From positions 124,001-188,000 of IMG/VR virus record IMGVR_UViG_3300026521_000471: a stretch of DNA of 64,000 nucleotides. One strand, given 5' to 3'. Positions within the stretch are counted from its first letter, which is position 1. The number at the start of each line of letters is the position of its first letter. The notes under the pieces were generated by a model. The model did not search any database. It saw only the letters and a program-made list of their open reading frames with translations, and was not told the DNA's origin. Below are positions 38,832-59,636 of the stretch, in pieces. Made by a program: the position numbers and the translations under genes.

Positions 38832-39034
38832 TGATAACTGAAATTATAAGATTTAACTGTCATGTATTAAAGGTAAATAAATATAACAAAATAACTCCTG
38901 ATGAATTGTTATTAGAATATAAAACTCGTAACAACCTTATTTTAGAAAATACGGAAGTATATGTTGAAAGCTGTAAATGGGCTGCTGGAAGTACTAGTAC
39001 TATTATAACAAAAGTGAAAAGGATAGAAAAATGA
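38831..39034 (+). CDS. small hypothetical protein
   Basis: Coupled ORF. Confidence 0.5.
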   Translation: MITEIIRFNCHVLKVNKYNKITPDELLLEYKTRNNLILENTEVYVESCKWAAGSTSTIITKVKRIEK

Positions 39035-39480
39035 CTTATGCTCAAAATAAAAAGGCTAGATTTAATTATGAAATCATAGAAATATTTGAAGCAGGGATTG
39101 TACTAACAGGTGGTGAAGTAAAATCTGTAAGAGATAGTACAATTTCTCTTAAAGAAAGCTATGTTAAAATAAAAAATAATGAATTATTTTTAACTCAAGC
39201 TCATGTTTCAGTCCCTACATACATACCATCATATGCAGTATTTGATGAAGTCCAAGATAGAAAATTGTTAATGCATAAAAGAGAGATTTTAAAACTTAAA
39301 AATAAATTGAAAGAACAGGGTTTGACTTTAATTGTATTATCAATTTATCAACGTGAAGGCACAAAAAAGATAAAAGTACAGTTGGCATTAGCTAGAGGTA
39401 AAAAATTATATAATAAAAAACAAACTATCAAAGAACGTGATATTAAACGAGATATGGAAAGAACATTAAAAAAATTCTAA
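39031..39480 (+). CDS. smpB: SsrA-binding protein SmpB
   Basis: NKKARFNYEI, EAGIVLTGGEVKSVR, RKLLMHKREI, ARGKKLYNKKQTIKERD. Confidence 0.95.
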   Translation: MTYAQNKKARFNYEIIEIFEAGIVLTGGEVKSVRDSTISLKESYVKIKNNELFLTQAHVSVPTYIPSYAVFDEVQDRKLLMHKREILKLKNKLKEQGLTLIVLSIYQREGTKKIKVQLALARGKKLYNKKQTIKERDIKRDMERTLKKF

Positions 39481-39520
39481 TAGGTATAAATAATTATAAA
39501 ATAATCTTAGGAGCAATAAA

Positions 39521-39814
39521 ATGGCAAGAAAGAAAAAGATTCAAGAAGAAGTAGAAGTACCAGTTGTTGAAGTAACTGATGAAGAGATTCAAGAAGAAGT
39601 AGAAGTAGAAGTAGAAGTACCAGTTGTTGAAGTAACTGATGAAGAGATTCAAGAAGAAGTAACTGATGATTTTGATAATATTGCAATTACTGATTATGCT
39701 ATGGTATCAAATGAATTAGCAAAAAAAATACTTGAGAAAAAAGGTAAAAAAGTATTATTTGAAGAGCCAGAAGACGTTCAATCTAGCTTTCATATGAAAC
39801 CATTAAAAAAATAA
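39521..39814 (+). CDS. late acidic repeat protein
   Basis: TATAAATA at 39485; IQEEVEVPVVEVTDEE repeats. Confidence 0.65.
   Translation: MARKKKIQEEVEVPVVEVTDEEIQEEVEVEVEVPVVEVTDEEIQEEVTDDFDNIAITDYAMVSNELAKKILEKKGKKVLFEEPEDVQSSFHMKPLKK
39537..39669 (+). repeat. in-frame tandem repeat (~48-bp unit, about 2.5 copies, with GTAGAA expansion)
   Basis: AGATTCAAGAAGAAGTA occurs three times; CCAGTTGTTGAAGTAACTGATGAAG occurs twice. Confidence 0.85.
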
Positions 39815-39851
39815 TTTTTTATTGTAAAATAAAATTATATTAAATAAAAAA

Positions 39852-40011
39852 ATGACTTTAAATTTTTAAGTGTTTAGTCATCACTTCATTAAATCAAAAT
39901 ATATTATGTTAGTCTCTGTATGTTAATAATAAAGTATATTCGTTAATATACGGAGGTTAATCCTCAAAAATATTTTTATAGACTTAAAAAATAATTGTGT
40001 TAGTCTATCAC
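39852..40011 (+). promoter_or_regulatory. candidate structured 5' leader RNA (three hairpins)
   Basis: ATGACT..AGTCAT, TTAGTCTCTGTAT..ATACGGAGGTTAA (with G-U pairs), ATAGACT..AGTCTAT. Confidence 0.45.
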
Positions 40012-40023
40012 AAAGGAAAAATC

Positions 40024-40812: not shown

Positions 40813-40839
40813 TTTGTATAATATATAAAAAGGATCAAA

Positions 40840-41106: not shown

Positions 41107-41114
41107 AATTTAAT

Positions 41115-41534: not shown

Positions 41535-41588
41535 TTTTTAAGTTTATTTCTTTTATAATTATGTATAAAATTATATAAGGAATATTAT

Positions 41589-42842
41589 ATGGCTATTTTA
41601 CAGCTCCATTCTGATGATCCAAATTTTGGATACATTATCAAAAAAAACCCAAATTCATCTATGCAAATAAGAAGTATACGTAAAGGTACTGCTTTTACAT
41701 GGTATTCTCATAATGGTACCGACTTTAATATTTATTTTAAAGATGCTGATAATGATGTATCGTTTGGATCGCAAGAATTCGATTATCTAAATATTTCTAA
41801 ATATAATTCACCGATGTTTATTATCAATGCAATAAGTGAGTTTTTTTCAAGTACTGTTAGAGAAGAATCAGAATTAGATATAAAAAGTTCAAAATATTTT
41901 TATATTAACTTACTTGAAATCAAAAGAATAAAACAATTAATGGATTTTAAGAAATATTTCCCTGATTTTGAAATTGAAATTACCGAACAAGTTGGGAAAA
42001 ATTATACTATTAAAGTAATAACTGAAAATAGTTGGTTTATGTTATTAAATTATATTAATCTTATGATGATTTTTATTGCATTATCAAGTAACGACTACGT
42101 ACATTTAGATAGTTCAAATATTGAAAAATATCTAAATGCTATGAATCGATTGGATGCACCATTTTTTATACGTTATTTAGTAAGTAGAAATCTTATTAAA
42201 AGTAAAAACCAATTTAAAAAATATAAACAATTACTTGAAAAATCAAAAAGATATAATATCAATATGGCATATGGTAATACGGCTATGCAACGGAAAGACA
42301 AAATAGAACGTTTATTATCATTTGATAAATCGATTCTTGATATTGGGTGTGGAGAAGGTTTTTATGCTATAGATTTTTCTAAAAAAATAGAAAAATATTC
42401 TTATAATGCCATTGACATTAATCCTAATCTATTAGAGTCGATCAAGATAAAAGCTTCAAAAAAAGAAATTACAAATATTAATCTCTTTAATAGTCTAGAA
42501 GATTTTATAAAGATTTACAATGATGAGTTAGTAGATATAATACTAACTGAAGTTATTGAACACATGCCAAAAGATGAATCAAAAAGATTAATAGAGACAG
42601 TATTGATGTCTATTAATTTTAATACATTCATTATTACCGTACCAAATAAAGACTTTAATATTTTTTATGAATTAGGTGATGAAATGAGACATGATGATCA
42701 TGACTGGGAACCTACATTTGATGAATTTAAAAATTTTATAGCTAATTTTAATAATGATGGTTTATCTTTTGAATTTATAGAAATAGGTGATACTATCGAT
42801 GGTATCTCTACAAGTATCGGTTGTATAATTAAAAAGGTATAA
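41589..42842 (+). CDS. hen1: Hen1-like RNA 3'-terminal 2'-O-methyltransferase
   Basis: N-terminal FGYIIKKNP; LDIGCGEG, TEVIEH, TVPNKDFN, RHDDHDWE. Confidence 0.85.
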   Translation: MAILQLHSDDPNFGYIIKKNPNSSMQIRSIRKGTAFTWYSHNGTDFNIYFKDADNDVSFGSQEFDYLNISKYNSPMFIINAISEFFSSTVREESELDIKSSKYFYINLLEIKRIKQLMDFKKYFPDFEIEITEQVGKNYTIKVITENSWFMLLNYINLMMIFIALSSNDYVHLDSSNIEKYLNAMNRLDAPFFIRYLVSRNLIKSKNQFKKYKQLLEKSKRYNINMAYGNTAMQRKDKIERLLSFDKSILDIGCGEGFYAIDFSKKIEKYSYNAIDINPNLLESIKIKASKKEITNINLFNSLEDFIKIYNDELVDIILTEVIEHMPKDESKRLIETVLMSINFNTFIITVPNKDFNIFYELGDEMRHDDHDWEPTFDEFKNFIANFNNDGLSFEFIEIGDTIDGISTSIGCIIKKV

Positions 42843-42844
42843 AA

Positions 42845-43729
42845 ATGCTATTAACATTTGGAGGATATGGTGGTGAATATTGCTGTGGTGAACTCAGTAA
42901 GCTTCATATTAACAATATAAAAGAACTACTTAGACGTTTTGAATACGAAGATATTATTGGACATTTCGATACAATTTTTAGTAGTAGTGGATGGGAAAGA
43001 CAATATTATGATTTTGATGATATTGAACATATTTCTAGCTGTGCCATTGATGGTAGTATTTCTATTAATCCTAATGAACGCGAACATACAAAGTATGATT
43101 CTATTAATATTAGTGATTTAACTATCAATATCAATGATGATGACTTTTTATCTGATGGTTGGTATATTTCATCAGCTTCCATAGAAAAAGGTATTTTTTT
43201 TGAAGCAGAAATTTTAGATGATGTCAATGAATTTAATAAAGATTTACTGATCATAGATGCAAAAGATACAGATTATATTGGTACTGGAGACATTTTAGTT
43301 ACTGATGTTTTTTACAATAATAAAGTCCTCGAAATGAACTATGATGTTATGGATACATTCGGTAAAGGTTTCTATCAAAGTATTTTTCATGTTAAAGATA
43401 GGATACATTATGACGGAAAGGAAAAACTCCTAGACGATTTTAAAAACTCTTTTAATATTATTGAAATGGTTGGTATGGATCGTGAAGATATAATCTTTGA
43501 ATATTTAGAATATGTAGAAGCTGCAAATAATAAGCATTTAATAAAAGATGATCGAATTATAGTTTGGGCTAGTCCATTCTTATATGAACATTTTGAAAAA
43601 GAAGATGTAGACCTTTTATGGATGACTGAAAAGAATATTAAATTCGCATTGAAAAATGGTTTAAAAGATGAAATACCACCAAATATTTTTGAACGTATTA
43701 TTATGAGGTTTCCAGAATGGCTAATTTAG
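42845..43729 (+). CDS. acidic hypothetical protein (C-terminal FPEWLI)
   Basis: ORF. Confidence 0.6.
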   Translation: MLLTFGGYGGEYCCGELSKLHINNIKELLRRFEYEDIIGHFDTIFSSSGWERQYYDFDDIEHISSCAIDGSISINPNEREHTKYDSINISDLTININDDDFLSDGWYISSASIEKGIFFEAEILDDVNEFNKDLLIIDAKDTDYIGTGDILVTDVFYNNKVLEMNYDVMDTFGKGFYQSIFHVKDRIHYDGKEKLLDDFKNSFNIIEMVGMDREDIIFEYLEYVEAANNKHLIKDDRIIVWASPFLYEHFEKEDVDLLWMTEKNIKFALKNGLKDEIPPNIFERIIMRFPEWLI

Positions 43730-44007
43730 TATATGGTATTACCATTGATAGAAAATTATTTCATGGCAAAATTATAAAATCCAGTTTGAAATCTATGATT
43801 TCTATTAAGACAGTTGATAATAGAATTTTAAATTTTCCTAAGTCTCATAAATTATTTAAAACAAAAGAAGAACGAGATATAGAAATTTTTTTAAATAATA
43901 ATAATTTAAGCATAGATAAAGTTGCAGAGTTATATAATATTAACAAAAAAGAGGCAATTTTAGCTTACCAATCAGCTATTAAAAAATTTCCCGAAAAATT
44001 TATATAA
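43717..44007 (+). CDS. hypothetical protein (C-terminal FPEKFI)
   Basis: Coupled ORF. Confidence 0.6.
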   Translation: MANLVYGITIDRKLFHGKIIKSSLKSMISIKTVDNRILNFPKSHKLFKTKEERDIEIFLNNNNLSIDKVAELYNINKKEAILAYQSAIKKFPEKFI

Positions 44008-44016
44008 AGGATCATT

Positions 44017-44610
44017 GTGAATATTAAAAGCAATATAAAATCTAACATTAAAGGTAAATCCTTAATAAGAACAAAATCTTACATTATACCGACTACTGTA
44101 ACATTTCTTATAGGTTGTTTTATATGGTTATTAGATGGTAGCTGGGGAGTATATTTAACATTTTTAATTATAGGTATCATTACCCACTTTATTTATGTAG
44201 GTATAAATGAACATTCAAGATATAATCATGATCTGCATTGGGATAATGAAGCCTATTATAATTGGTTTGCCATTGTTGGTTTACCAATGATATTAATTGG
44301 TATTTTTTACCCATTTGCTATATCCCCAGCAATCCACGACTATTATCATGCAGAACGAATTGATGAAGAAATACCTATCGACAAAAATATTTCTCTTATG
44401 TACAATGACTACCATAGTACATTTATATTAATGGTTGAAGGAGAAAAACAACCTCTTCTAATTGATAAAGGTGGTTCTAGCGATACTTACAATCGTATGA
44501 AAGCTAGCTATCTTGATAAAAAAATAAAAGTAGTTAAAAAAAGATATAAATCTTGGACTGATGACGAAATTCAAACAGTTTATCAGTTAGATGGTTACAC
44601 ATTCAAATAA
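44017..44610 (+). CDS. three-TM membrane protein
   Basis: Hydrophobic segments at about aa 22-60 and 82-101. Confidence 0.6.
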   Translation: MNIKSNIKSNIKGKSLIRTKSYIIPTTVTFLIGCFIWLLDGSWGVYLTFLIIGIITHFIYVGINEHSRYNHDLHWDNEAYYNWFAIVGLPMILIGIFYPFAISPAIHDYYHAERIDEEIPIDKNISLMYNDYHSTFILMVEGEKQPLLIDKGGSSDTYNRMKASYLDKKIKVVKKRYKSWTDDEIQTVYQLDGYTFK

Positions 44611-44619
44611 AGGATTTTT

Positions 44620-47310
44620 ATGAATAAAATTAAAACACAAGTACATACTATAATAATGCTTATTGGACCTAGTGGTTCTGGTAAAACAACATTCGCTAAT
44701 GAAATTCTAATACCCACATTACAAGAATATAAAGGTAGTGGAAATGACAATTTAAAAACAAATATACAATATATTAGTTCTGATGATATTAGAAAAGATA
44801 TTTTAGGATATAATTATAGTAAAATAGATGAAATTATGACTGAAAGTTCAACACAAGCATTTGAAATATTATTTACAAAATTAAGAGCTGTTACTAGTTA
44901 TCCAATCAATGCTGAATTTGTTATTTTAGATACAACTGGATTAAGTGAAAAATTTAGAAATGATGTTTTAGATATAGCAAAAGATAATAATTATAATGTC
45001 GATATTATAGTTTTCGATTATAAGAATATTGATGAATATCAGAAAAATTTTTCTGATGAAGTTTATCAACAACCTAGTACTAATGGCAAAATTATTTCTA
45101 AGCATATAAAAAGATTAAAAACAGAAACATTAAAAACATTAAAAAAAGGTGTATATAAAAATATTCATAAAATTAAAAATAAAGATTTTCTTTTAGAAGT
45201 TGAACAGGAGAATCCATATGATTTAACACCTACTATGTTAAAACCTCTTTATAGTGTAGATGTATGGGATTGGAAAAAATATACTGATAGAATATTAAAT
45301 AGTACTTATGATTGGATTACTATTGGTGATGTTCATGGATGTATTCATGAATTAAAACAATTACTTGAAAAATATGGTTTTATAATTGAAGACAATGAAA
45401 TCATAGATACAAACAAAACAAAAAATATAGGATTGATTTTTGCAGGTGATTTAATTGATAAGTCGTCAGAAGAAGATTTAACTGAAACTATAAGATTTAT
45501 ACATAAAAATATGATAAAATTTCAAGATCGTTTTCAATTAATATTAGGTAATCATGAAGAGATGGTCTGGAAATGGATAACAAATCATAAAGATTTAGAA
45601 ATTACTCCAGAACGATTGGATCAGAAAAAAAGATACTATAATACAGCAATTTTACTAGAGAAAAATGAAGAGTTAAAATCTATGTTTTTAGATATTTTTC
45701 ATAATATGAAAGGTTGGGTTAAATTTATAGGATTAAACAAAAGAAGTTTTGTAGTTACACATGCACCATGTGAGGTTAAATATCTCGAAAAAATGGATCG
45801 TATTTCATTAAAACGTCAATATAAATGCGCTAGTAGAAGTAAAAACAAAGATAAGACTAATGATGAACTAACACCATATTTAAAAGAAGAAGCAGTTAAT
45901 AACCATCCAGTTCACATATTTGGTCATATGGGACAATCATCTGTTAGATCTTTTAAAAATAAAGTTTGTATTGATACAGGCTGTGTATATGGTGGAAGAT
46001 TAACTGGATACAGTATAGGATACGGTAAACCATTTATTCAAAGTGTAAAATCATTATCTCCTAAGAGTGCAAGAAACGACTTTGGAAATAATCTATTTGA
46101 AGATATAGGTAAAGCTATAAAAGAAGTATCTATTGAAGATTTAAATCCATACAACCAAAAAAGATTAGATTATATAGTAAAAAATGGCATAGGATACATA
46201 GGAGGTACAATTTCACCTTCAAATAAAAACATCGAAAAAAATTCACTAGAATCTTTAGATAGTGGACTTAATTATTTCAAAGATAAAGTAGATAGTGTAG
46301 TTCTACAACCTAAATATATGGGGTCTAGAGCACAACTGTATCTCTTTAAAGATAATATTGAAAAATGCTATGCTACAAGTAGAAATGGATATAAAATTAG
46401 AGAGGACTTAACTGATTTATTCTCATCTAAATTAATAGAATACAAGCATATTTTTGATATGTATAATGCTGATGAGATAATTATAGATGGTGAATTATTA
46501 CCATGGGCTCTTTTAGGAAAAGGTTTGATAGAAACACATTTTAAAACTGCGGATATAGCTATCCAAACAGAAATCGACTTTCTGGATGATAATGGGTTTG
46601 ATAAGGCTTTTTTAAGTTTAAAGGATGAATTTAATGAATCAGAATTTTTAAAAGATAAAAATATTTTAGCTAAAAAAGAATTAGCTAAAAAATATGGTCA
46701 CAAATATCACTCTTATAAAGATTTAAAATTTGAAATTGATAGATTCATACCTTTAAGTAAACACAAAAAAGCTTGGAAAATTTTCAATAAACAAATAACC
46801 CTTTATGGAGATGATACAAATACAGATTTTAAAGGTTTTAGATTATTAAAAGTAATATCAAATAACAATATAATCGATTTGGATCTAACCCCTAGCGAAC
46901 ACTTTAAACTATTAAATTCAGATGATATTCATATTGTTGATTTCAATGATAAAGACTATTTAGTTAAAGCTGAAAGATGGTATGATGATTTAGTGAGTAA
47001 TCAAAATATGGAAGGTTGTGTAATAAAACCGGAAGTAAAGTTATTAGAATCTTGGATTGCTCCATATTTAAAAGTAAGAAATGAAGAATATCTTTCTATC
47101 ATTTATGGGTATGATTATAAATTCCCTGTCAAATTTAATAGATTATTAAATCAAAAAAATATTTCTAAAAAATTAAGACTCTCTATATCAGAGTATAAAT
47201 TAGGAGAAGAAATGCTTAAAGCTCCTATGGGTAGTAAAGAACAAATACAGATTATAGCCAATCTATTATTTGAAAATGAAAAAGAAGAAAGCGTCGATCC
47301 AAGATTATAA
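44620..47310 (+). CDS. pnkp: bacterial-type Pnkp (kinase-phosphatase-ligase) RNA repair enzyme
   Basis: GPSGSGKT kinase; GDVHG, GDLID, GNHE, FGH, IDTG phosphoesterase; QPKYMGSR, DGELLPW, EGCVIKP, KVRN ligase; C-terminal VDPRL. Confidence 0.92.
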   Translation: MNKIKTQVHTIIMLIGPSGSGKTTFANEILIPTLQEYKGSGNDNLKTNIQYISSDDIRKDILGYNYSKIDEIMTESSTQAFEILFTKLRAVTSYPINAEFVILDTTGLSEKFRNDVLDIAKDNNYNVDIIVFDYKNIDEYQKNFSDEVYQQPSTNGKIISKHIKRLKTETLKTLKKGVYKNIHKIKNKDFLLEVEQENPYDLTPTMLKPLYSVDVWDWKKYTDRILNSTYDWITIGDVHGCIHELKQLLEKYGFIIEDNEIIDTNKTKNIGLIFAGDLIDKSSEEDLTETIRFIHKNMIKFQDRFQLILGNHEEMVWKWITNHKDLEITPERLDQKKRYYNTAILLEKNEELKSMFLDIFHNMKGWVKFIGLNKRSFVVTHAPCEVKYLEKMDRISLKRQYKCASRSKNKDKTNDELTPYLKEEAVNNHPVHIFGHMGQSSVRSFKNKVCIDTGCVYGGRLTGYSIGYGKPFIQSVKSLSPKSARNDFGNNLFEDIGKAIKEVSIEDLNPYNQKRLDYIVKNGIGYIGGTISPSNKNIEKNSLESLDSGLNYFKDKVDSVVLQPKYMGSRAQLYLFKDNIEKCYATSRNGYKIREDLTDLFSSKLIEYKHIFDMYNADEIIIDGELLPWALLGKGLIETHFKTADIAIQTEIDFLDDNGFDKAFLSLKDEFNESEFLKDKNILAKKELAKKYGHKYHSYKDLKFEIDRFIPLSKHKKAWKIFNKQITLYGDDTNTDFKGFRLLKVISNNNIIDLDLTPSEHFKLLNSDDIHIVDFNDKDYLVKAERWYDDLVSNQNMEGCVIKPEVKLLESWIAPYLKVRNEEYLSIIYGYDYKFPVKFNRLLNQKNISKKLRLSISEYKLGEEMLKAPMGSKEQIQIIANLLFENEKEESVDPRL

Positions 47311-48429: not shown

Positions 48430-49068
48430 ATGAAAAAAATACTTATAGTAGTAGACTACCAATTTGACTTTGCTAGCCCAACAGGGGCTCTATCAGTACC
48501 CAATGCTGATAAAATAGTTGATAACATCCAATCTTATATCAATGATAAATCGTATGAAAATATAATTTATACTTTTGATACTCATACATCTGATAAATAT
48601 AATGGTTCTGATGAATCTAAAATTTTTCCTTCAATTCATTGTGAATTTGGAACAATCGGTTGGAATTTTTATAAAATTAAACCCAGATATAAAAATTGGG
48701 ATAATTTTATTGCAAATCGTGGAATCGATGAAGGTACAGTACCTTTTAACACCTTTATAGTTGAATCGGAAATGTTTTTTACAAAAGATGTTTTTGATAT
48801 TTGGCAAGGAAATTCAATCTTTAAATCTATTTTTACAAATACCTTTAAACCAAAGGACACAATTATAGACATTGTAGGTGTAGCTACAAATTACTGCGTA
48901 TTTATGAATGTTATGGGTCTAGTAAAAAATGGTTATACAGTTAATGTTCTTTCAGATGCTGTTGAAGGGATTAAATCATTTCCAGATGGATCAATAGATG
49001 ATAGTTTTCAAACAAATATCAATGTTATGAAAAATAAAGGTGTAACTTTTTCTGGAGACATAAAATGA
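48430..49068 (+). CDS. pncA: nicotinamidase
   Basis: VVDYQFDF, GALSV, DTH, HC, K, VGVATNYCV. Confidence 0.85.
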   Translation: MKKILIVVDYQFDFASPTGALSVPNADKIVDNIQSYINDKSYENIIYTFDTHTSDKYNGSDESKIFPSIHCEFGTIGWNFYKIKPRYKNWDNFIANRGIDEGTVPFNTFIVESEMFFTKDVFDIWQGNSIFKSIFTNTFKPKDTIIDIVGVATNYCVFMNVMGLVKNGYTVNVLSDAVEGIKSFPDGSIDDSFQTNINVMKNKGVTFSGDIK

Positions 49069-49961
49069 TTATGAAAGTAATAGAAAGTTCAGAAGAGAAT
49101 GTTTGGAAATATATTTTTAATGATAATGAAATAGTTTTGGAAAGTGTATTATATAAATACGGTTCATTCGATAAAAGAACTGTTATTTGTTGTTCTGTAC
49201 AAAGTGGTTGTCCGGTTGGATGTACATTTTGTGGAACAGGTGCAAATTTCTTAAAAAATATTTCATCAGATCAAATAGTTGAGCAAATAACAACTATTTT
49301 TAAAGATAAAAATATCGAGGATATAAACAGTAGATGTGAAAAGCTTCAAATAATGTTTATGAGTATGGGTGAACCATTTCTTAATTACAAAAATGTTAAA
49401 GAAGCAATAATTAAATTGAATAAATTATACCCTAATGCCGACTTATTAATATCTACTGTTGGTATTAATGATGATAAAATTTTTAAAGATTTTATTTCAT
49501 TATCTAAAATGATTAAAAAAGTTGGTTTACAATTTAGTATTCATAAATCAAATGATACAGATAGAGATAAATTAATACCCTTTAAAAAGAAATATACACT
49601 TAGGGAAATCAGAGATAGAGGTACTATTTGGCATAAAGAAACAGGGAGACAAGTATATCTCAACTACTGTGTTGATGGTACAAATAATAGTCAAAATGAT
49701 ATTGAGAATCTTAAGAATCTCTTTTCTCCAATTATTTTTAATATGACATTTAGTGTTATTTGTGAAGCAGATGAAACAATGAAAGATAGTTCATGTAGAA
49801 ATTTGAATACGATTAGAGATTTTGAAAAATCTTTTATTGAAGAAGGGTATAATACCAGAATATTTGATCCTGCTGGACAGGACGATATTGGTGGAGGATG
49901 TGGCCAATTATGGTTCGTTCAAGATTATCTTAAAAATAAAAAAATGAAAGCAGAGGTATAA
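49065..49961 (+). CDS. RlmN/Cfr-like radical SAM RNA methyltransferase
   Basis: SVQSGCPVGCTFC, FMSMGEP, ISTVG, FSIH, DIGGGCGQL. Confidence 0.8.
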   Translation: MIMKVIESSEENVWKYIFNDNEIVLESVLYKYGSFDKRTVICCSVQSGCPVGCTFCGTGANFLKNISSDQIVEQITTIFKDKNIEDINSRCEKLQIMFMSMGEPFLNYKNVKEAIIKLNKLYPNADLLISTVGINDDKIFKDFISLSKMIKKVGLQFSIHKSNDTDRDKLIPFKKKYTLREIRDRGTIWHKETGRQVYLNYCVDGTNNSQNDIENLKNLFSPIIFNMTFSVICEADETMKDSSCRNLNTIRDFEKSFIEEGYNTRIFDPAGQDDIGGGCGQLWFVQDYLKNKKMKAEV

Positions 49962-49965: not shown

Positions 49966-50919
49966 ATGGAAAAAATAGAAACACTAACCGATATGGTAGA
50001 AGTAATCAGAGAAATAAAAACACCGACAAGTCAAAAAGCTAATATGGTTGTAGGAAATATTAGAGCACAAATTAAAAATTACGTACAACGTAATAATCTT
50101 AAATCACTTGTAGTAGGTGTGAGTGGGGGTCTTGATTCAGCTGTTGTAGCGGCTCTTTGTCAAGAAGAATTTACAGGAGTACCTCTAATTGGTCTTTCTA
50201 TTCCTATGAGTTCAACTAACGCTCACAAAGAACAGGCAGAATGGGTAGGTAATACCTTTTGTACGGCTTTTGAAGAATTCAACTATTGGGATGAAACTTT
50301 TCAGTACAATGAAGAAGAAGGTACTGATATGATGAGTGAAGTATTTAATACCGTTTCAGCAACAGATAAAGTTGCTGAAAAAGCAGGATTTAAAACGGAA
50401 GATTTTCCAAAAAATGTTCTTCAAGGTAATATTAAAGCGAGGCTTAGAATGATAACTCTTTATGACCTTGCAAGAAAAACAAACGGTATGGTTCTTTCAA
50501 CAGATAACCTTTCTGAATTTCAAATGGGATTTTGGACTATTTGTGGTGATGTAGGTGATTTTGGACCTATCCAAAATGTTGGTAAGGGGTTTGAGCTTCC
50601 AGCCATAGCAAGAGCTCTTGGAATAAGAGCAGATATTATCACTCAATCGCCTAGTGATGGACTAATGGTAACTGAAGAAAATACAGATGAGGCTCAACTT
50701 GGAGCTAATTATGAGGAAGTTGATACTATTATGAGTATTTATCTTGGCAATATCAATAAACCAAAAGAAATTATAGATAAACTTAAAAGTAACCTATTTA
50801 ATATTATTAATGATAAAAAGAGTGCTAAGAAAATTTCAAATGTAATTACACGTTATGAAAATTCACACTTTAAACGTAATGGTACAATCAACCTTACAAG
50901 AGAACAGATCGGAATCTAA
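49966..50919 (+). CDS. nadE: NH3-dependent NAD synthetase
   Basis: GVSGGLDS, GNIKARLRM, STDNLSE, GD, PSDGL, TDEAQLG, HFKR. Confidence 0.9.
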   Translation: MEKIETLTDMVEVIREIKTPTSQKANMVVGNIRAQIKNYVQRNNLKSLVVGVSGGLDSAVVAALCQEEFTGVPLIGLSIPMSSTNAHKEQAEWVGNTFCTAFEEFNYWDETFQYNEEEGTDMMSEVFNTVSATDKVAEKAGFKTEDFPKNVLQGNIKARLRMITLYDLARKTNGMVLSTDNLSEFQMGFWTICGDVGDFGPIQNVGKGFELPAIARALGIRADIITQSPSDGLMVTEENTDEAQLGANYEEVDTIMSIYLGNINKPKEIIDKLKSNLFNIINDKKSAKKISNVITRYENSHFKRNGTINLTREQIGI

Positions 50920-51865: not shown

Positions 51866-53005
51866 ATGAAAAAAAGTATGAGAGAAGAATCTTTAGGAAC
51901 TAGACTTAAAGGTTATGAAAGAGAGTTTGAATCAGTAATCGATCCAAAGGATTTTATTATTTGTAGAATTGATGGACATAAATTTAGCAAATATACAAAA
52001 GGTATGAAAAAACCATTTGATAAAATGTTGTCAAATACAATGGAGGAAACTACTAAAGACCTTGTTGAAAAATTTGGAGCCGTAACGGGCTATACGCAAT
52101 CTGATGAAATTTCATTGGTTTTTGTCCCTCAATTCAAAGAAAGATTAATACCTATTGAAACCAAAGAATTATTTGTTCTTAATGATGAAGAAGCAACCTA
52201 TAAAGTTTATGACAAAGAATACAACTTGCTAGGTTCATTAGATATTAGTTATGAAGATATGGATGATGAATATTTCAGTATTAACTTTTGGGTAGTTTCT
52301 GATACTAATGATGAAATTATCGATCAATGTTCTTGGCAAAATAGAAACTCTAAAACTGAGGCTAAAGCATTAGAAACGCTTTTAAAGTATATCATTAAGA
52401 AAGTTGAAATAACAAATGAGCAAATTTTTGGAGGAAGAGTTCAGAAATTAACTTCTTTGATTGCGGCATATACTACTATGCAGTTTAATAAACACTTTTC
52501 TAAATTTTTAGAAAAAACATACGAAGATTATGAAGAAAAATTAGAAAAGGGCGAAATCGATACGAATAGTTTAGAGGCCATGAAATACCTTAAAACAATG
52601 GATGAAAAAGTAGGTAATGCTTGGTTTGATGCTAGAGTTTATGGCGTATCATCTAAAGAAGAAGCATTTAACAGTATTATGTGGCGAATTCGTGATGCCG
52701 AGAAGAACTCTAGATCAATGTTTGCACAGACATACTGCTCTCATAAATCGCTATTAGGAAAAAATGGTCTTGAACAGGTTGAATACTGTAAAGAAACTAC
52801 TGGTAAAGATTGGGAAGAAGTTGAAGATAAATACAAATATGGCATTTTAGTTAAAAAAGAAAAATATCTTAAACCTATTTCTGAAGGGACTATGGATTAT
52901 GCTCAAAATGATTTTGTAGAAAGATCCAGAATTATTAGTTGGGCTGAAAAAATTACTACTTTCTCTGGTGAAAAAGTTGAAATGGTTGTTAGGAAATATA
53001 AATGA
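51866..53005 (+). CDS. Thg1-like 3'-5' nucleotidyltransferase with internal insertion
   Basis: CRIDGHKFSKYT, KPFD, GYTQSDEISL, FGGRVQKL, FDAR, WRIRDAEKNS. Confidence 0.88.
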   Translation: MKKSMREESLGTRLKGYEREFESVIDPKDFIICRIDGHKFSKYTKGMKKPFDKMLSNTMEETTKDLVEKFGAVTGYTQSDEISLVFVPQFKERLIPIETKELFVLNDEEATYKVYDKEYNLLGSLDISYEDMDDEYFSINFWVVSDTNDEIIDQCSWQNRNSKTEAKALETLLKYIIKKVEITNEQIFGGRVQKLTSLIAAYTTMQFNKHFSKFLEKTYEDYEEKLEKGEIDTNSLEAMKYLKTMDEKVGNAWFDARVYGVSSKEEAFNSIMWRIRDAEKNSRSMFAQTYCSHKSLLGKNGLEQVEYCKETTGKDWEEVEDKYKYGILVKKEKYLKPISEGTMDYAQNDFVERSRIISWAEKITTFSGEKVEMVVRKYK

Positions 53006-53276: not shown

Positions 53277-53705
53277 ATGAAACCTACGTCTATTGGAATT
53301 ATTCCCTATCGGTTTTCTGAAAACGGGGTATCTATTCTTTTAATGCGGTCTTCTAAGAAAAATGATAGATTCGATTTTGTTAAAGGTAAGATAGAACCTT
53401 ATGAAACTAGAGTAGACTGTTGTTTACGAGAAGTTCAGGAAGAAATAGGTGTTTCACTTTCCAAAGAAGATTTAGACTTTTCTGTTAAGCAATACAATAA
53501 GAAGAAAAATATTGAATTATTCTTTATTCATTGGGATAAATATTTGTATAAGCAATTTAAATTAGATGAACGAGAAGTTTTTGAACTAAAATGGTTTAAT
53601 TTGAATGAAATACCTACAATTTCTCAGAACCAACGTTTGATTATTACGAAAATAAATGAAAGATTTAACAAATTACATCAACTACTAAGGAGTAACTATG
53701 TTTGA
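53277..53705 (+). CDS. NUDIX hydrolase
   Basis: KGKIEPYETRVDCCLREVQEEIG. Confidence 0.85.
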   Translation: MKPTSIGIIPYRFSENGVSILLMRSSKKNDRFDFVKGKIEPYETRVDCCLREVQEEIGVSLSKEDLDFSVKQYNKKKNIELFFIHWDKYLYKQFKLDEREVFELKWFNLNEIPTISQNQRLIITKINERFNKLHQLLRSNYV

Positions 53706-53843: not shown

Positions 53844-54365
53844 ATGAACGCCTTGTTCTTAGATATTGATGGAGTTTTAAATAATTACCATCTTAAAGAA
53901 CCATTTACTTTTCCAAACGGTTATACACAGCAACCAGTTAAAGGCACTCAAAATAAATGGAATGGTTTAATGGGTATGGATTATGATAAAGTTAATTTAT
54001 TAAATGAAATACTTGAAAGTAACGAGTGGAAAGTAATAATATCAAGCTCTTGGTATTATTCGGATAGTACTGTTAATGCGTTAAAACATTTTGGTTTTAA
54101 ATATTCAGATAGAATTATTGGTGGTACAAATAGAAAATCATATGGTAGAGGAAAACAAATCCTAGATGCTGTTGAAGATTTTAAAGTAACAGATTTTATT
54201 ATTTTAGATGATGAACTATTTGATATTACTGGAAACTCTGAATTTGTTAGTAATAATATGCGAGAAATATTTAGAGATAGAGTGTTTAAAACAAATCCAT
54301 ACATAGGTTTAACTGAAAAGACAGTCTCTAATATTTTAAAAAGATTAGACTATTTTATAATTTAA
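53844..54365 (+). CDS. HAD phosphatase of the RNA-repair (Swiss-army-knife) type
   Basis: LFLDIDGVLN, VIISSSW, RGKQI, FIILDD, GLT. Confidence 0.75.
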   Translation: MNALFLDIDGVLNNYHLKEPFTFPNGYTQQPVKGTQNKWNGLMGMDYDKVNLLNEILESNEWKVIISSSWYYSDSTVNALKHFGFKYSDRIIGGTNRKSYGRGKQILDAVEDFKVTDFIILDDELFDITGNSEFVSNNMREIFRDRVFKTNPYIGLTEKTVSNILKRLDYFII

Positions 54366-54403: not shown

Positions 54404-54658
54404 ATGAAATTTTCAACAGTAAAAGAAATGGAAGAGACATTGAAAAAAATTAAATCAAAAAAAGAATTATCTCAAGATATATCATTTAGAAGTCAAGGTG
54501 AAGAAATTTTTCTTGAATTTATAGGTGAAGGAACAAGACAAAATCTTAAAGATATGATATGGATAGGTAGAGAAACAGCAGATAATCTAAGGATTTCATT
54601 TGATGATAATGGCGATGATTCAATTAATATCCTAGAATATTCTTTAAATAGAGGATAA
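54404..54658 (+). CDS. small late hypothetical protein
   Basis: TATAAATA at 54368 and GGAG RBS. Confidence 0.6.
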   Translation: MKFSTVKEMEETLKKIKSKKELSQDISFRSQGEEIFLEFIGEGTRQNLKDMIWIGRETADNLRISFDDNGDDSINILEYSLNRG

Positions 54659-54662
54659 TAAA

Positions 54663-55884: not shown

Positions 55885-57288
55885 ATGGCTTTATTAACTT
55901 ACGATGAAGTATTAGAAATCACAAAAATAAATGAAACTTTTAAAATGAAACACCAAAAAATAGGTAACACAGAAATTGCAATGTGTACTTATTTTTTAGC
56001 AAATGCAGGTGATTTTTTTGATGCAAAATTAGATGGCTCTATGGTTAGAGCCACAGAATTAAGAGGTATAACATTTGTAAAAGCTCCAAATTCAGACTGG
56101 AAAACATATTTGTTTATCGATAAATTTTTTAATATCGGTCAAACAAATGGAACTAATATAACAAATATGGAACTTTCTATCAATGACTCAACTGAAATTT
56201 GTAATATTAATAAACTTTTTATCGATGAAAATGAGAAAACATATCGTGCAATAGATTTAAAGTTAAATATGATTGTTGCTGAATTTGATAGAAATACTGA
56301 AACTCATGGGGATTTTTTTCAAATTTTATCACTAGATAAAAAAGTTTTACCTACATTGAAACCTGAAAATTCTTGGATGTATGAGGATGTAAAAGATTTA
56401 GAAATTGTAAGAATTGCAAATAAAGAAGATGGATCCGCAATAAGATTTCTTTTAATTGAAGGAAAATTAGTGGCTAAAACAAAATTTTCTTTTGAATCAG
56501 AACAATGCAAATTAGCTATGGAAATAGTTGAAAAAGATCCTAAACTTAAAGCATTTATTTTAACAACTTTAGAGTTTGGATATGCAGCAATTTTTGAAAT
56601 AGTTTCACCATTTAATAAAATCGTTTTAACATATCCAGAAACATCTCTTAGATTGTTGCAACTAAGAGATGAAAATAATGATGGGTTATATCTAAATATA
56701 TATGATAATACATTAGTAAAAGCATTTAATATCTTGACTGCCAATCAAGAACCTTTATACACACTTGATGAGTTACTTAAATTAAAAGAAACCGTTGAAG
56801 ATAAAGAAGGTTGGGTAATTACATTTGAAAATGGAAAAATGGCAAAGGTAAAAACTGATTGGTATATGTCACTTCATGGTATTTTAACTGATGGGTTAAA
56901 AGAACATAAAATAATTGAAAAGGTTTTAGACGAAACGATTGATGATACTATAGCAATGATACCAGAAGAAAATATTGAAGAACGAGATTTTATTGATGGT
57001 ATCTCTGAAATTATAATTAATCATGTAAATCATTTAGTGTCAGATGCAGAAGCTAAATTTAAAAATTCATGGAATGGAAATAAAAAAGAGTTAGCACTAA
57101 AATTTAAGGATGATAAACGTGCTTTTCCATATATAATGAGTTTTGCAAATGGAAAAAATATTGAAGAAATTGAAAAACAAGTTATAGATAGAGTTAAATT
57201 TGAATGTAGACGTTTAGAAATGGCTAAACAATACCTTAAAAATTTAGGTTTTGACAAAGAACTCGAAATAAAAATTGAGGATGATTAA
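55885..57288 (+). CDS. T4 Rnl1-like RNA ligase with insertion
   Basis: ELRG, KFFN, motif I KEDGS, FEIVSP.N.IV..Y, EGWV, KVKTDWY..LH. Confidence 0.85.
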   Translation: MALLTYDEVLEITKINETFKMKHQKIGNTEIAMCTYFLANAGDFFDAKLDGSMVRATELRGITFVKAPNSDWKTYLFIDKFFNIGQTNGTNITNMELSINDSTEICNINKLFIDENEKTYRAIDLKLNMIVAEFDRNTETHGDFFQILSLDKKVLPTLKPENSWMYEDVKDLEIVRIANKEDGSAIRFLLIEGKLVAKTKFSFESEQCKLAMEIVEKDPKLKAFILTTLEFGYAAIFEIVSPFNKIVLTYPETSLRLLQLRDENNDGLYLNIYDNTLVKAFNILTANQEPLYTLDELLKLKETVEDKEGWVITFENGKMAKVKTDWYMSLHGILTDGLKEHKIIEKVLDETIDDTIAMIPEENIEERDFIDGISEIIINHVNHLVSDAEAKFKNSWNGNKKELALKFKDDKRAFPYIMSFANGKNIEEIEKQVIDRVKFECRRLEMAKQYLKNLGFDKELEIKIEDD

Positions 57289-57290
57289 TC

Positions 57291-57458
57291 ATGAAATACG
57301 GTTTTAGTTTATTTGAATTAATTATTGTAGTTGTAATATTGGGAATTCTAGCAGCAGTTGCTATTCCTAGATTATCAAATTCTTCATCAAATAATGATAA
57401 AATTTCATACAAAAAAATAATTTTTACTAATGGTGATGGTGGATCCGCCGAGAATTGA
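57291..57458 (+). CDS. mini prepilin-like peptide (55 aa, not in ORF track)
   Basis: MKYG/FSLFELIIVVVILGILAAVAIPRL class III signal (G-1, F+1, E+5); GAGG RBS. Confidence 0.75.
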   Translation: MKYGFSLFELIIVVVILGILAAVAIPRLSNSSSNNDKISYKKIIFTNGDGGSAEN

Positions 57459-57818
57459 ACTCGGGTCTGCCACTACTTCCATTTAAATCTCATTTACAAG
57501 TTTAGTTTGATTTTTAATACTTTAATACTTAGATAACCAAACAAATCGGTATTAAAGGCACTTGATATAATTTTCGTCTAAAGGTATCAAGTTTAACTTT
57601 AGCTTATCTATTTTTTATTATACACTCTGTATTTATTAGTAAATAGACAACTAATAAACTGAGTGATTCCGGGCTCCCAGAGGGAGGATTAAGCAGCTAC
57701 TCTCGCAGTCTGTGGAATATAAAGTTTTGTGTTTGCATTTAAGCTTTTTTGATGATTAAGTCATCACTCTACTTGCAATTTAAATTTCTTATAGCAACAT
57801 CGATCCCAATTCGGACCC
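57437..57818 (-). ncRNA. ssrA: tmRNA
   Basis: 5' GGGTCCG pairs with 3' CGGATCC-ACCA with a G3-U wobble; T-arm CCGAG-TTCAATT-CTCGG; tag ORF ANTKLYIPQTARVAA* at 57736-57689. Confidence 0.93.
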
Positions 57819-57825
57819 ATAAAAA

Positions 57826-57856
57826 ATATCAGTATATAGAAATTATATACTGATAT
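57826..57856. repeat. 13-bp inverted repeat next to the tmRNA 5' end
   Basis: ATATCAGTATATA-GAAAT-TATATACTGATAT. Confidence 0.7.
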
Positions 57857-58136
57857 GATAATATCCTTTATTTTATACCCAAGGTAACAAAGAACCCTTT
57901 ACATAAAAAAACACATACGATATTAATTTATCTTTTTACTTGTAAGTAAATTAGAGCGTTATCAATTAAGATAAATACGTTCCATAAGAGTTATTTTCTC
58001 TAGGTCAATCTCTAAGATAAAATTTTAAAGAGTAATTTAAATCTCTTATATATTTATTTTACAATTTTTAATTTAATTATAAGGTATTTTTTGATATAAT
58101 ATATTACAAATTTTAAATAATTAAGGAGATTGTCCT

Positions 58137-59636
58137 ATGGCAAAATTTAACCAAGGTACTAAAAGTATCCCAAATAGTAAAAATATGGCTGGAGGGGTAT
58201 CATATGATCGCCCAATAAAAAAAGAGGTTGCGACTGTTGTTTTAAACTCTATGCTTAATGGTGATTCATATTATGAAAAAGAAGGTGAACGTTTAAAACG
58301 AATTGAAACTCTTATCACTACATCAAAGTCTGATGCTGAGTTTGTAGCAAAAGCTATGGTGTTTACTAGAACAAATGGTCGTCTTAGAAGTATTTCACAT
58401 TTCATGGCAAATATTTTAGCAGAAAATGTAAAAGGTAGTGACTTTTTACGTTCAGCATTAACAAAAGCTATTGTAAGACCGGATGATATGACAGAAATGT
58501 TATCACTTTGGGATACAAGAAATCCAAATAAAATGGTTCCGAATTCACTTAGAAGAGCCTTTAAGAAAGCTTTGGAAACTAAATTTGATGAATATCAATT
58601 TCGTAAATATGCTCAACCAAAATCAAAAGTGAAACTAAAAGATGTCGTTAAACTAGCACATCCTTCACCTAAGAATTTTGATGATGAAACTATTTTTAAA
58701 AGAGTTATCGAAGATCAATTAAAGGCTGTTGAAACAGCACAAACTATCAATGCATCTAAAACTGGTGAAGATCGAGTTGAAGCATATATGAAAGAAATTA
58801 AATCTGGTAAAATGGGTTATATGGCAGCATTAAAAAATATTAGAACATTGATGGAAAATAATATTTCAGAAGATGACTTAAAACAATGGTCTAATTTTAT
58901 AACTGATCCTAAAAGGGTACAAAAATCAATGGTACTTCCATTTAGATTTGTTGATGCATGGAATGCTGTAAAAGATTTACCTATTAATGAATTTAAGAAA
59001 AATATTGTTAAGAAAGCACTTGAGAGAGCTTTTGCCCTATCAGCTGGAAATACAAATATTGCTTCTGATGATGAAAAAGTGGCTATTTTACTTGATGAAT
59101 CAGGTTCTATGGGCGGATATTCAAATAATGACCGTAAAACACCATTTTATATTGGTAAAGTATTATCAGCTGCGATGAAAGTAGGTATGGATGATGATAA
59201 GTGTCTGTTTTATACTTGGGCAGATACATGTACAAGAAGAGATATAAAAGGTTTGTCATCTTTTGATTTTATCAATAATTTAAATACTAGAGGTGGAGGT
59301 ACTGATGTATCAGCTCCTTTAAAAGAGTTAATTAAAACAAAAACATTTGTTGATAAAATTATAATCTTTAGTGATATGCAGATGTATGGTGGATGGGGAA
59401 ATATTGGAGATCAACTCAAAAATTATTTAAAAACATATCGTAAAGAAGTCAATCCAAATGTAAAAGTATTATTTTGGAATTTAGAAGGATATGGTGGTGG
59501 TTCACCATTAGATATTGAAAAAACATCTGATATTTTTGAAGTAGCTGGTTTTTCAGATAGCATGCTTCAAATTATACCTAAATTATGGAGTGATAAAGAT
59601 TTTTTAATTAAAGAGATTGAAGCTATATCACTTTAA
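58137..59636 (+). CDS. Ro60/TROVE-domain RNA-binding protein with vWA domain
   Basis: NMAGGVSY, SYYE, RPDD, FDEYQFRKY, LKDVVKLAHP, LPFRF, DESGSM, GGTD, FSDMQ, VAGFSD. Confidence 0.9.
   Translation: MAKFNQGTKSIPNSKNMAGGVSYDRPIKKEVATVVLNSMLNGDSYYEKEGERLKRIETLITTSKSDAEFVAKAMVFTRTNGRLRSISHFMANILAENVKGSDFLRSALTKAIVRPDDMTEMLSLWDTRNPNKMVPNSLRRAFKKALETKFDEYQFRKYAQPKSKVKLKDVVKLAHPSPKNFDDETIFKRVIEDQLKAVETAQTINASKTGEDRVEAYMKEIKSGKMGYMAALKNIRTLMENNISEDDLKQWSNFITDPKRVQKSMVLPFRFVDAWNAVKDLPINEFKKNIVKKALERAFALSAGNTNIASDDEKVAILLDESGSMGGYSNNDRKTPFYIGKVLSAAMKVGMDDDKCLFYTWADTCTRRDIKGLSSFDFINNLNTRGGGTDVSAPLKELIKTKTFVDKIIIFSDMQMYGGWGNIGDQLKNYLKTYRKEVNPNVKVLFWNLEGYGGGSPLDIEKTSDIFEVAGFSDSMLQIIPKLWSDKDFLIKEIEAISL

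Follow-up and report, generated by a model that had tools for sequence, protein, structure and literature searches.

In a family of very large phages from hydrothermal vents, sequence comparison revealed a conserved island of about 20-25 kb which apparently encodes, with its motifs intact, machinery for the handling of RNA ends and stalled ribosomes. The island was studied in a window of 64,000 nt (bases 124,001-188,000 of the 224,467-bp IMG/VR virus record IMGVR_UViG_3300026521_000471), where it extends exactly from the SmpB start to the Ro60 stop codon (39031-59636), the limits already given in a preliminary description of this DNA. The nine genes named there (SmpB, Hen1, Pnkp, an RlmN-like enzyme, a Thg1-like enzyme, a HAD phosphatase, an Rnl1-like ligase, tmRNA and Ro60) were all recovered at their positions when checked with Pfam, NCBIfam, ARAGORN and Rfam. 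These identifications hold; the list had overlooked the NAD genes lying among them, the location of tmRNA on the minus strand, and a putative Y-RNA partner of Ro60. In our judgement the island probably serves to maintain translation while tRNA, rRNA, mRNA or NAD+ come under attack from the host or a competing element in the course of a long infection. Gene calls rest on Pfam and NCBIfam matches and the tmRNA call on ARAGORN and Rfam; coordinates are collected in Table 1.

Conservation and synteny of the island

No match was obtained when the DNA of the entire region was compared with 50,697 phage records. Searches of IMG/VR with the single Pnkp protein and with a Ro60 alignment also gave nothing, and an alignment of Pnkp homologues together with a metagenome scan was needed to detect relatives. 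About 30 Pnkp homologues (53-63% identity) were found on metagenomic contigs, and all contigs that were opened proved syntenic with the window.

Synteny of the block extends to at least five related contigs, the larger of which measure 221-496 kb while others are shorter. On the 496-kb contig the first part comprises SmpB, Hen1, the same three uncharacterised open reading frames (ORFs), Pnkp, PncA, NadE, the RlmN-like enzyme and Thg1, and the rest DUF6794, NUDIX, HAD_SAK_2, Rnl1, a pilin-like ORF, tmRNA, Ro60 and GroES. SmpB, Hen1, Pnkp, PncA, NadE, Rnl1, tmRNA and Ro60 are present on a 261-kb contig, and Hen1, Pnkp, Nmnat, Nampt, Thg1, an acidic protein and Rnl1 on one of 228 kb. The right half of the block also occurs in a sister phage of 221.5 kb and in two contigs of lesser length. 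Further, full-length Pnkp is encoded on 11 more distant IMG/VR contigs, in 10 of them with Hen1 immediately upstream. As judged from this conserved gene order, the grouping is beyond chance, and because the syntenic block is conserved in a phage family, a functional linkage of its genes is a reasonable assumption.

Pnkp and Hen1

Hen1 shows the layout required by the Pnkp-Hen1 family, i.e. an N-terminal ligase-activating domain and a C-terminal methyltransferase, and its S-adenosylmethionine motif (ILDIGCGEG) and metal motifs (EVIEH and HDDH) are intact. Within Pnkp, residues 234-465 correspond to a PrpE-like metallophosphoesterase (NCBIfam), and this phosphatase domain matches the Clostridium thermocellum module (PDB 4j6o). 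The ligase domain found its best PDB match in Rnl of the Capnocytophaga Pnkp1-Rnl-Hen1 complex (4xru, 3.5e-46), the match to the C. thermocellum Pnkp ligase being weaker (2.5e-16). Invariant in 18 homologues are the P-loop residues (G16..G21-K22), the phosphatase motifs GDxH, GD and GNHE, and ligase residue K565. Neither protein reached its equivalog cut-off (Pnkp, TIGR04075, 196.6 bits vs 750; Hen1, TIGR04074, 65.2 vs 340); they are therefore regarded as divergent phage versions and filed as Pnkp-like and Hen1-like. The two genes, separated here by 1.8 kb, are adjacent in relatives.

A complex between the Pnkp ligase domain and Hen1 was predicted with a score of 0.71, compared with 0.01 for the best of three controls, a result that possibly includes memory of solved structures. 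Of the solved complexes 51 of 78 attained the score mark applied, compared with 2 of 108 mismatched pairs. The predicted interface lies on Hen1 residues 1-140, the N-terminal domain, as in solved bacterial complexes.

tmRNA and SmpB

The Rfam match of the tmRNA gene spans the full model, and the tRNA-like domain, the G3:U70 pair, the CCA end and the tag reading frame are all present. The gene is divergent from that for Ro60, adjoins Rnl1 and occupies the same place on the same strand in five lineages. In an alignment of these lineages, 40 of the 95 predicted pairs carry compensatory double changes, and the acceptor stem covaries while G3:U70 is invariant. SmpB is full-length (TIGR00086, 164.4 bits, above the cut-off of 119.1); it is found at the same position throughout the family with 60-72% identity, and is at most 52% identical to the cellular SmpB proteins retrieved. 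Given the covariation of the RNA and the family divergence of the protein, both partners appear to be long-term residents rather than recent captures.

The encoded tag is ANTKLYIPQTARVAA in this phage and its sister, and ANTKLYIPQSARVAA, AEAKLYIPQSARVAA and ANAKLYVPSAMRVAA in others. The conserved pattern is ..KLYIPQ.ARVAA, in part of the family in the form ANTKLYIPQ(T/S)ARVAA; it differs from the ..ALAA endings that we take to be common among tags. Conservation of the tag within the phage family would fit an offensive use, in which the phage or a competing element deploys a ribotoxin of its own for host shut-off or superinfection exclusion, Pnkp-Hen1 marks and protects the phage tRNAs, and phage tmRNA and SmpB replace those of the host and put a tag of the phage's choice on stalled host products. 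The phage moreover brings its own tRNAs, EF-Tu and an SmpB that is distant from all cellular SmpB proteins retrieved. Pfam and PHROG scans, however, recognised no ribotoxin-like gene in the block, no protease or adaptor reading the tag is encoded, and ClpP is missing from the record; such a use is purely conjectural and we consider it very unlikely.

Pieces of tmRNA, Rnl1 and Ro60 were detected in RNA libraries from vents and biofilm, those in library X5 being 100% identical to the record and the longer ones in library X7 showing at most one differing letter. The tmRNA was covered in X5 by a 326-nt contig (57453-57778) with a word depth of 240, as opposed to 2-17 for the Rnl1 and Ro60 pieces, and no contig lay on the spacer; in X7 the tmRNA contig (57489-57802) had a depth of 6.2, similar to that of the other X7 pieces. 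These depths are a crude measure, taken from assembled contigs that carry no strand and may include carried-over DNA. The tmRNA may be expressed in nature, and we take the signal as supportive only.

Self-BLAST of the spacer between tmRNA and Ro60 likewise picked up, as an inverted repeat, the hairpin that immediately precedes the 5' end of the tmRNA; its G-C pairs were too few for a pattern scan to score it as a terminator. A more distant contig with Ro60 carries an unusually long tmRNA-like gene (L046:15158-15724; 567 nt; Rfam, 74.3 bits) for which ARAGORN gives the odd tag VGKILKSAFP.

Ro60 and its putative RNA partners

The von Willebrand factor A (vWA) domain of Ro60 falls just under the model cut-off (vWA_Ro60, 5.4e-05, 23.6 bits vs 27.7), and DESGS stands at the expected position of the metal-ion-dependent adhesion site. 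Vibrio phages Va1 and phiKT1024 encode TROVE proteins of 50% identity to it, and within the family identity is 67-95%. In Ro60 of the 261-kb relative about 29 aa are inserted in frame. On two other contigs (L051, 10001-11607, and L052) the reading frame of Ro60 is lost after about residue 186 and continues in a different one, which may reflect an insertion, an intron or a frameshift.

Rfam searches up to E 10, folds and motif scans found no Y RNA beside Ro60 in the 318-nt spacer, nor one in the rest of the window. The spacer holds only the hairpin and a block shared with one relative. The latter, a 64-nt non-coding block (57953-58013; L039:15275-15335 in the 496-kb relative) of the form ..GAGTTAT(T/G)TTCTCTAGGTCAATCTCT.., is 81% identical, compared with about 60-70% for the proteins; it may act as a promoter or operator or encode a small RNA.

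In relatives the spacer between tmRNA and Ro60 is 0.8-1.1 kb long, contains no ORF of more than 84 codons, and harbours a recurring element on the Ro60 strand, present in one to four copies just upstream of Ro60. It consists of a long closing stem that ends in G-A/U-C, an internal loop (AUUACA on one side, GAUUU(U/C)A on the other), a 7-bp helix and then AUUACAUCG; the core accordingly reads 5' GA, AUUACA, 7-bp helix and AUUACAUCG, paired with the 3' helix, GAUUU(U/C)A and UC. Among 19 distinct instances in Ro60 loci, compensatory changes occur at every position of the 7-bp helix. In some of the copies the element is built around a permuted tRNA-like domain made up of a T arm, a closed acceptor stem and a D arm, and the copy of one relative matches the Rfam model YrlA below threshold (39.5 bits, E 3e-05). 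The motif GNCGAAN0-1G of bacterial Y RNAs (PMC4201824), at which Ro binds, is missing from these candidates.

The phage studied here has two such copies, about 100-112 kb away from Ro60 in the tRNA array. The first directly follows a large non-coding RNA resembling GOLLD, which does not reach the gathering score of its model and in which a tRNA-like element (69,347-69,416) is nested. By position, architecture and covariation the elements look like a divergent subclass of Y RNA and are a probable RNA partner of Ro60. A descriptor based on pairing alone gave about three chance hits per 0.5-Mb shuffle, so that the conserved loops are needed for specificity. A scan of IMG/VR for the 5' half gave 115 hits, of which more than 100 belonged to a single unrelated coding sequence and only four had the 3' partner.

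Other RNA repair and modification enzymes

The Rnl1-like ligase matched TIGR02308 (3e-27) with 95.7 bits and did not reach the equivalog cut-off for T4 RnlA (242.25). When compared with T4 Rnl1 (2c5u, 1.8e-19), its adenylylation motif KEDGS (KxDG) was aligned. The HAD phosphatase retains the DxD motif (FLDIDGV).

The Thg1-like protein aligned with that of Bacillus thuringiensis (4kgk, 1.5e-22) in two blocks (residues 8-87 and 221-336), in which RIDG and SDEIS are kept. Its palm domain is split by an insertion of about 130 aa (roughly residues 88-220) that is not intein-like by eye; the orthologue of the 496-kb relative (376 aa) shares this length, that of the 228-kb relative (274 aa) does not. 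A main role in adding G-1 to the phage tRNA-His was considered and rejected. The tRNA-His gene already encodes G-1, opposite C73, which makes repair of 5' ends a likelier task than maturation.

The RlmN-like enzyme was matched by model positions 73-342 of TIGR00048 and lacks the N-terminal domain (123.3 bits vs a cut-off of 290); it also matched PDB RlmN (6fz6, 3.5e-20). Its cysteines are intact, i.e. those of the cluster CPVGCTFC (CxxxCxxC) and the two involved in methyl transfer, one upstream (VICCSVQ) and one C-terminal (GCGQL).

NAD genes within the island

Genes for a PncA-like nicotinamidase, NadE, a NUDIX hydrolase and a DUF6794 protein are interleaved with the repair genes. The PncA-like protein matched the nicotinamidase model NF008623 (7.6e-13) below its cut-off and is syntenic in relatives. 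In NadE the PP-loop SGGLDS is intact, and the order of DUF6794 and NUDIX is the same in the 496-kb relative. In relatives the NAD genes are always found at one spot; most lineages have PncA and NadE there, one has Nampt and Nmnat. This fixed position combined with a variable gene type argues for selection on function as opposed to hitch-hiking. A complete Preiss-Handler pathway was considered and rejected, as no NAPRTase was found and the record has only a CTP_transf_like gene elsewhere.

Upstream of the island lies a gene for a 304-aa protein that has only the adenylation domain of an NAD-type ligase; counterparts of this protein precede the block in two relatives. It had no sequence match in PDB. 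This protein may be an NAD+ consumer that accounts for the NAD genes in its vicinity, or else a third ligase acting on nucleic acids.

Further genes of the island and its borders

The three ORFs between hen1 and pnkp gave no Pfam or PHROG match and no informative match in the protein Atlas. They are kept in the 496-kb relative (39-47% identity) and absent where hen1 abuts pnkp; in the 261-kb relative no match to them was found. The 84-aa and 383-aa proteins are encoded directly upstream of Rnl1 in four lineages, with 35-41% identity to the three others. They have no family match, and their Atlas neighbours are phage-only hypothetical clusters. The 383-aa protein (34% Asp+Glu, 7% Lys+Arg) could be a nucleic-acid mimic.

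The 55-aa ORF has a textbook prepilin leader and hydrophobic helix (MKYG followed by FSLFELIIVVVILGILAAVAIPRL), and its stop codon lies inside the tmRNA gene. A 60-aa orthologue with a weak match to PF07963 (N_methyl) is present at the same place in the 496-kb relative. The first 35 nt of this ORF attract unrelated pilin transcripts from the vent community. At the borders, the order of the PD-(D/E)XK nuclease, the 202-aa ORF and the UvsW_N-like protein upstream of smpB is identical in relatives, and GroES downstream of Ro60 is kept at 64-100% identity.

Table 1. Features of the island, its surroundings and the remainder of the record. Positions are those of the window unless marked as genome positions or given with the number of an L piece; bit scores are followed by the model cut-off after "vs".
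Feature	Position	Strand	Evidence and remarks
SmpB, tmRNA-binding protein, 149 aa	39031..39480	+	PF01668 1.4e-48; NF003843 166.9 bits vs 130
Hen1, RNA 3'-terminal 2'-O-methyltransferase	41589..42842	+	Hen1_N 1.5e-64; Methyltransf_25
Three ORFs (294, 96, 197 aa) between hen1 and pnkp	42845..44610	+	Uncharacterised; 197-aa ORF looks membrane-spanning by eye
Pnkp, 896 aa, 5'-kinase, 2',3'-phosphatase and RNA ligase	44620..47310	+	AAA_33; PNKP_ligase; TIGR04075 6.5e-58
PncA-like nicotinamidase, isochorismatase fold	48430..49068	+	PF00857 2.3e-14
RlmN/Cfr-like radical-SAM RNA methyl synthase	49065..49961	+	TIGR00048 1e-35
NadE, NH3-dependent NAD+ synthetase	49966..50919	+	PF02540 3.1e-43; TIGR00552 142.8 bits vs 63.65
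Thg1-like protein, 3'-5' nucleotidyltransferase family	51866..53005	+	PF04446 4.8e-27, 94.9 bits vs 29.2
DUF6794 protein	53002-53268	+	PF20594 2.3e-08
NUDIX hydrolase	53277-53705	+	PF00293 7.2e-16; Nudix box GKIEPYETRVDCCLREVQEEIGV present
HAD phosphatase, "Swiss-army-knife" RNA-repair type	53844..54365	+	PF18143 HAD_SAK_2 2.1e-18, above cut-off
84-aa protein	54404-54658	+	Conserved pair with the next, upstream of rnl1
383-aa very acidic protein	54663-55814	+	Conserved pair with the preceding, upstream of rnl1
Rnl1-like ATP-dependent RNA ligase, 467 aa, long N-terminus	55885..57288	+	PF09511 6.1e-13, above cut-off
55-aa ORF, prepilin-type N-terminus (G followed by FSLFELIIVVVILGILAAVAIP)	57291..57458	+	Overlaps tmRNA 3' end on the opposite strand
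tmRNA, tag ANTKLYIPQTARVAA then stop	57437..57818	-	ARAGORN; Rfam RF00023 115.5 bits vs gathering score 47
Perfect 13-bp hairpin just upstream of tmRNA 5' end	57826..57856		Fold of 318-nt spacer; U-run follows on minus strand
Ro60, TROVE ring and vWA domain	58137..59636	+	PF05731 5.9e-16, 59.1 bits vs 23
NAD-dependent ligase adenylation-domain protein, 304 aa	33358..34272	+	PF01653 1.8e-11; context, upstream of island
PD-(D/E)XK nuclease	36373-37398	+	PF12705 6.9e-23; syntenic anchor upstream of smpB
202-aa ORF	37395-38003	+	No family match; syntenic anchor upstream of smpB
UvsW_N-like domain protein	37996-38544	+	PF21241 1.3e-07; syntenic anchor upstream of smpB
GroES co-chaperonin	60533..60808	-	PF00166 4.8e-21; downstream of Ro60
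GOLLD-like large non-coding RNA	genome 69,284-69,785	+	Rfam RF02032 110.7 bits, E 2.7e-28, vs gathering score 150
Y-like RNA, first copy	genome 69,803-69,925		Fold z-score -5.2; tRNA array, outside window
Y-like RNA, second copy	genome 81,730-81,810		tRNA array, outside window
RlaP RNA-repair nucleotidyltransferase	L005:4928-6436		Same record, outside window
EF-Tu	L006:2531-3682		Full three-domain protein; elsewhere in record
AspRS	L008:14364-16214		Elsewhere in record
GroEL	L010:1726-3351		Same record, just before window

Viral nature and source of the record

The record is linear, with a CheckV completeness estimate of 85% and a G+C content of about 27%; public runs holding the sequence are hydrothermal-vent, epibiont and biofilm metagenomes. 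Given the 496-kb contig of one relative, the true genome may exceed the 224-kb record. Phage hallmarks encoded in it comprise rIIA, rIIB, a T4-type topoisomerase II, PhoH and the UvsW_N-domain protein. In addition, the record has genes for a DnaB-like helicase, ribonucleotide reductase, GroEL and GroES, and its tRNA genes (22 by ARAGORN, 23 by Rfam) are clustered at 67.7-83.7 kb. ClpP, RtcB and a CCA-adding enzyme were searched for and are absent from the record.

A cellular or plasmid origin of the contig, or recent capture of non-functional genes (e.g. tmRNA as the leftover of an integration site), had to be considered. Four models for virion and packaging proteins (Gp23, Terminase_6N, Terminase_6C and tail sheath) found no match in the 224 kb of this incomplete linear record; tmRNA genes are common integration sites, and many of the "phage" SmpB hits in the phage database look like the edges of prophages. 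Against this stand the IMG/VR classification as a virus, rIIA, rIIB, the T4-type topoisomerase II, UvsW_N and PhoH, the failure to find any rRNA in the record, and several larger proteins that match only phage families of unknown function (PHROG). Recent capture or decay is excluded by the combination of synteny in at least five diverged contigs, compensatory changes in tmRNA and intact motifs. Taken together, the non-structural hallmarks make the viral nature of the record well supported, though short of definitive, and a non-phage origin is extremely unlikely. The assignment to a phage in the preliminary description agrees with the listing of the record as a virus.

The best cellular matches of SmpB are 44-52% identical and scattered over phyla, and no host or donor could be derived from them. 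Hints at the host are the vent origin, the G+C content of 27%, and the pilin leader, which we take to be Campylobacterota-like.

The record further contains four scattered paralogues of about 440 aa belonging to the uncharacterised family PHROG 10773 (including window 2668-5322, L009:580-1929 and L009:12040-13350), a PAS-GGDEF diguanylate cyclase (L005:6842-8137), a TnpB/Cas12f-like IS605 OrfB (L006:5833-7023) and an Alp7A-like actin (L006:3739-4713).

Proposed function

By analogy with characterised members of the families, the island products would act as follows: (i) Pnkp and Hen1 are predicted to form a complex, with the N-terminal domain of Hen1 on the Pnkp ligase domain; Pnkp would heal breaks of the ribotoxin type by opening or removing the 2',3'-cyclic or 3'-phosphate and phosphorylating the 5'-OH, Hen1 would 2'-O-methylate the 3' nucleotide, and Pnkp would then seal a junction that a transesterifying nuclease cannot recut; (ii) Rnl1 would seal breaks by another, T4-type route, probably together with the stand-alone HAD_SAK and the RlaP encoded elsewhere; (iii) the Thg1-like enzyme would rebuild trimmed 5' ends of tRNAs; (iv) the RlmN-like enzyme may re-install or add a methyl mark at A37 of tRNA or A2503 of 23S rRNA; (v) Ro60 would bind misfolded or broken RNAs together with the Y-RNA-like RNAs of the phage; (vi) phage tmRNA and SmpB, with phage EF-Tu, would release ribosomes from truncated mRNAs and tag the nascent chains with ..ARVAA; (vii) the PncA-like protein, NadE and NUDIX may sustain NAD+ and ADP-ribose metabolism, e.g. 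for the NAD-type ligase upstream. Along these lines, the preliminary description put forward a "layered counter-defence" directed at anticodon nucleases and mRNA-cleaving toxins, a plausible proposal.

The same genes may instead serve general upkeep, offsetting damage or shortage that the phage brings upon itself by turnover of host mRNA and tRNA, by long latency, or through heat and oxidation at the vents. The record holds a broad repertoire for self-sufficiency (AspRS, EF-Tu, GroEL/GroES, at least 22 tRNAs, ribonucleotide reductase), huge phages were reported to hold translation genes "to maintain translation efficiency" (PMC7162821), and bacterial Ro60 and Y RNA serve RNA quality control under stress (PMC4201824). 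However, the immunity to re-cleavage that distinguishes junctions repaired by Pnkp-Hen1 (PMC4411300) makes most sense against a site-specific nuclease, and an anticodon nuclease is classically countered by Rnl1 together with end-healing. Upkeep is a possible but somewhat unlikely explanation. The two readings are not mutually exclusive, and host defence is preferred as the selective driver, a choice that sequence alone cannot decide.

Several points weigh against a role in sustaining translation under attack. The scores of Pnkp, Hen1, Rnl1, RlmN and PncA below equivalog cut-offs imply that exact substrates may differ; the predicted Pnkp-Hen1 complex may reflect memory of solved structures; and the depth measure behind the putative expression of tmRNA is crude. 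The many unrelated or uncharacterised ORFs in the block may indicate a general region of auxiliary genes rather than one pathway, and virion genes were not matched by the four models applied.

A bolder extension would make the island and the RNAs elsewhere in the record one phage-private ribonucleoprotein system, in which Ro60 with a putative new class of Y RNA tethers damaged tRNAs or rRNA to Pnkp-Hen1, Rnl1 and the Thg1-like protein. In parallel, tmRNA, SmpB and EF-Tu would form a channel whose ..ARVAA tag is read differently from that of the host. This we regard as unlikely.

If the enzymes act as their families do, the island is among the most complete portable kits known for translation under RNA attack, comprising two sealing routes, junction methylation, rebuilding of 5' ends, RNA surveillance, ribosome rescue and NAD+ supply. 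As it is compact and syntenic, and its tmRNA apparently expressed, the kit would be a good source of parts for asking which of the defences that target RNA (anticodon nucleases, mRNA interferases, Cas13-type collateral RNases, NADases) are reversible, and which component reverses each. The phage-specific tmRNA tag and the divergent Y-RNA motif are offered for mechanistic study. No new category is opened by the island, the concept and most of the components having been described for jumbo and huge phages.

Comparison with known systems

RNA repair in jumbo phages was described by Iyer et al. (2021) as involving several non-redundant ligases, kinases and phosphatases, including HAD "Swiss-army-knife" enzymes, together with RlaP, CCA-adding enzymes, Thg1, TROVE, tRNA provisioning and NAD+ synthesis, and was interpreted as a set of counter-measures against host attacks on translation and NAD+ (PMC7824862). 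Pnkp-Hen1, Thg1, a CCA enzyme and GroES were reported for Xanthomonas phage XacN1 (PMC5852040), and tmRNAs and SmpB for huge phages by Al-Shayeb et al. 2020 (PMC7162821). Neither the components nor the idea of counter-defence is therefore new, both having been published. The preliminary description had called the combination unusual; this does not apply to its kind, given the three studies just cited, and does apply to its breadth. Catalogued phages seldom show this combination: of 50,697 records, 5 have Hen1, 67 SmpB (in many cases apparently the edge of a prophage or a fragment), 94 Ro60 and 162 Thg1. Neither tmRNA nor SmpB was found in the two Hen1 phages checked (XacN1 and RYC) or in the Ro60 phage phiKT1024. 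Such breadth within one conserved island is uncommon, and we found no description of an island of this kind.

With the jumbo phages and XacN1 the phage shares several RNA ligases, end-healing kinase and phosphatase, a HAD "Swiss-army-knife" enzyme, RlaP, Thg1, TROVE, many tRNAs, NAD+ synthesis and GroES. For NAD it has PncA and NadE instead of Nampt and Nmnat, the pair that a sister lineage has in the same place. In XacN1, NAD salvage genes lie close to those for a kinase, Hen1 and a ligase-domain protein. Whereas Pnkp is here a single three-domain protein, the counterparts in cultured Hen1 phages match only the ligase part beside Hen1. Compared with XacN1, RYC and phiKT1024, the present phage adds tmRNA and SmpB.

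The bacterial Pnkp-Hen1 systems have the same set of domains (kinase, metallophosphatase and ligase; two-domain Hen1), the same predicted interface and the same catalytic motifs. The version described here differs in being phage-borne and in its gene order, hen1 preceding pnkp with three ORFs in between. Its ligase is nearest to the stand-alone Rnl of the three-protein system, yet is fused as in the two-protein system. As in the T4 response to PrrC mediated by Rnl1 and Pnk, an Rnl1-family ligase with KEDGS is combined with phage-encoded end-healing. In contrast to T4, there is no T4-type Pnk, healing being left to Pnkp and perhaps HAD_SAK, and the ligase N-terminus is longer by about 80 aa.

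Phage Ro60 with Y-like RNAs was studied structurally in Thermus phage phiLo (PMC12135203). Published Ro60-Y RNA ribonucleoproteins (YrlA) resemble those proposed here in the TROVE and vWA domains, in the candidate RNAs that relatives encode upstream on the same strand, in a long stem with an internal loop, and in the tRNA-like domains of some copies. The RNAs proposed here differ in that GNCGAAN0-1G is replaced by AUUACA..AUUACAUCG / GAUUUYA and in that the copies of the present phage are located far from Ro60. Finally, tmRNA is known from cluster-C mycobacteriophages and Bacillus phage G (PMC4131195), and in huge phages it occurs together with SmpB, as it does here. What sets the present tmRNA apart is its location beside Rnl1 within one conserved repair island, its family-conserved tag and a putative expression signal.

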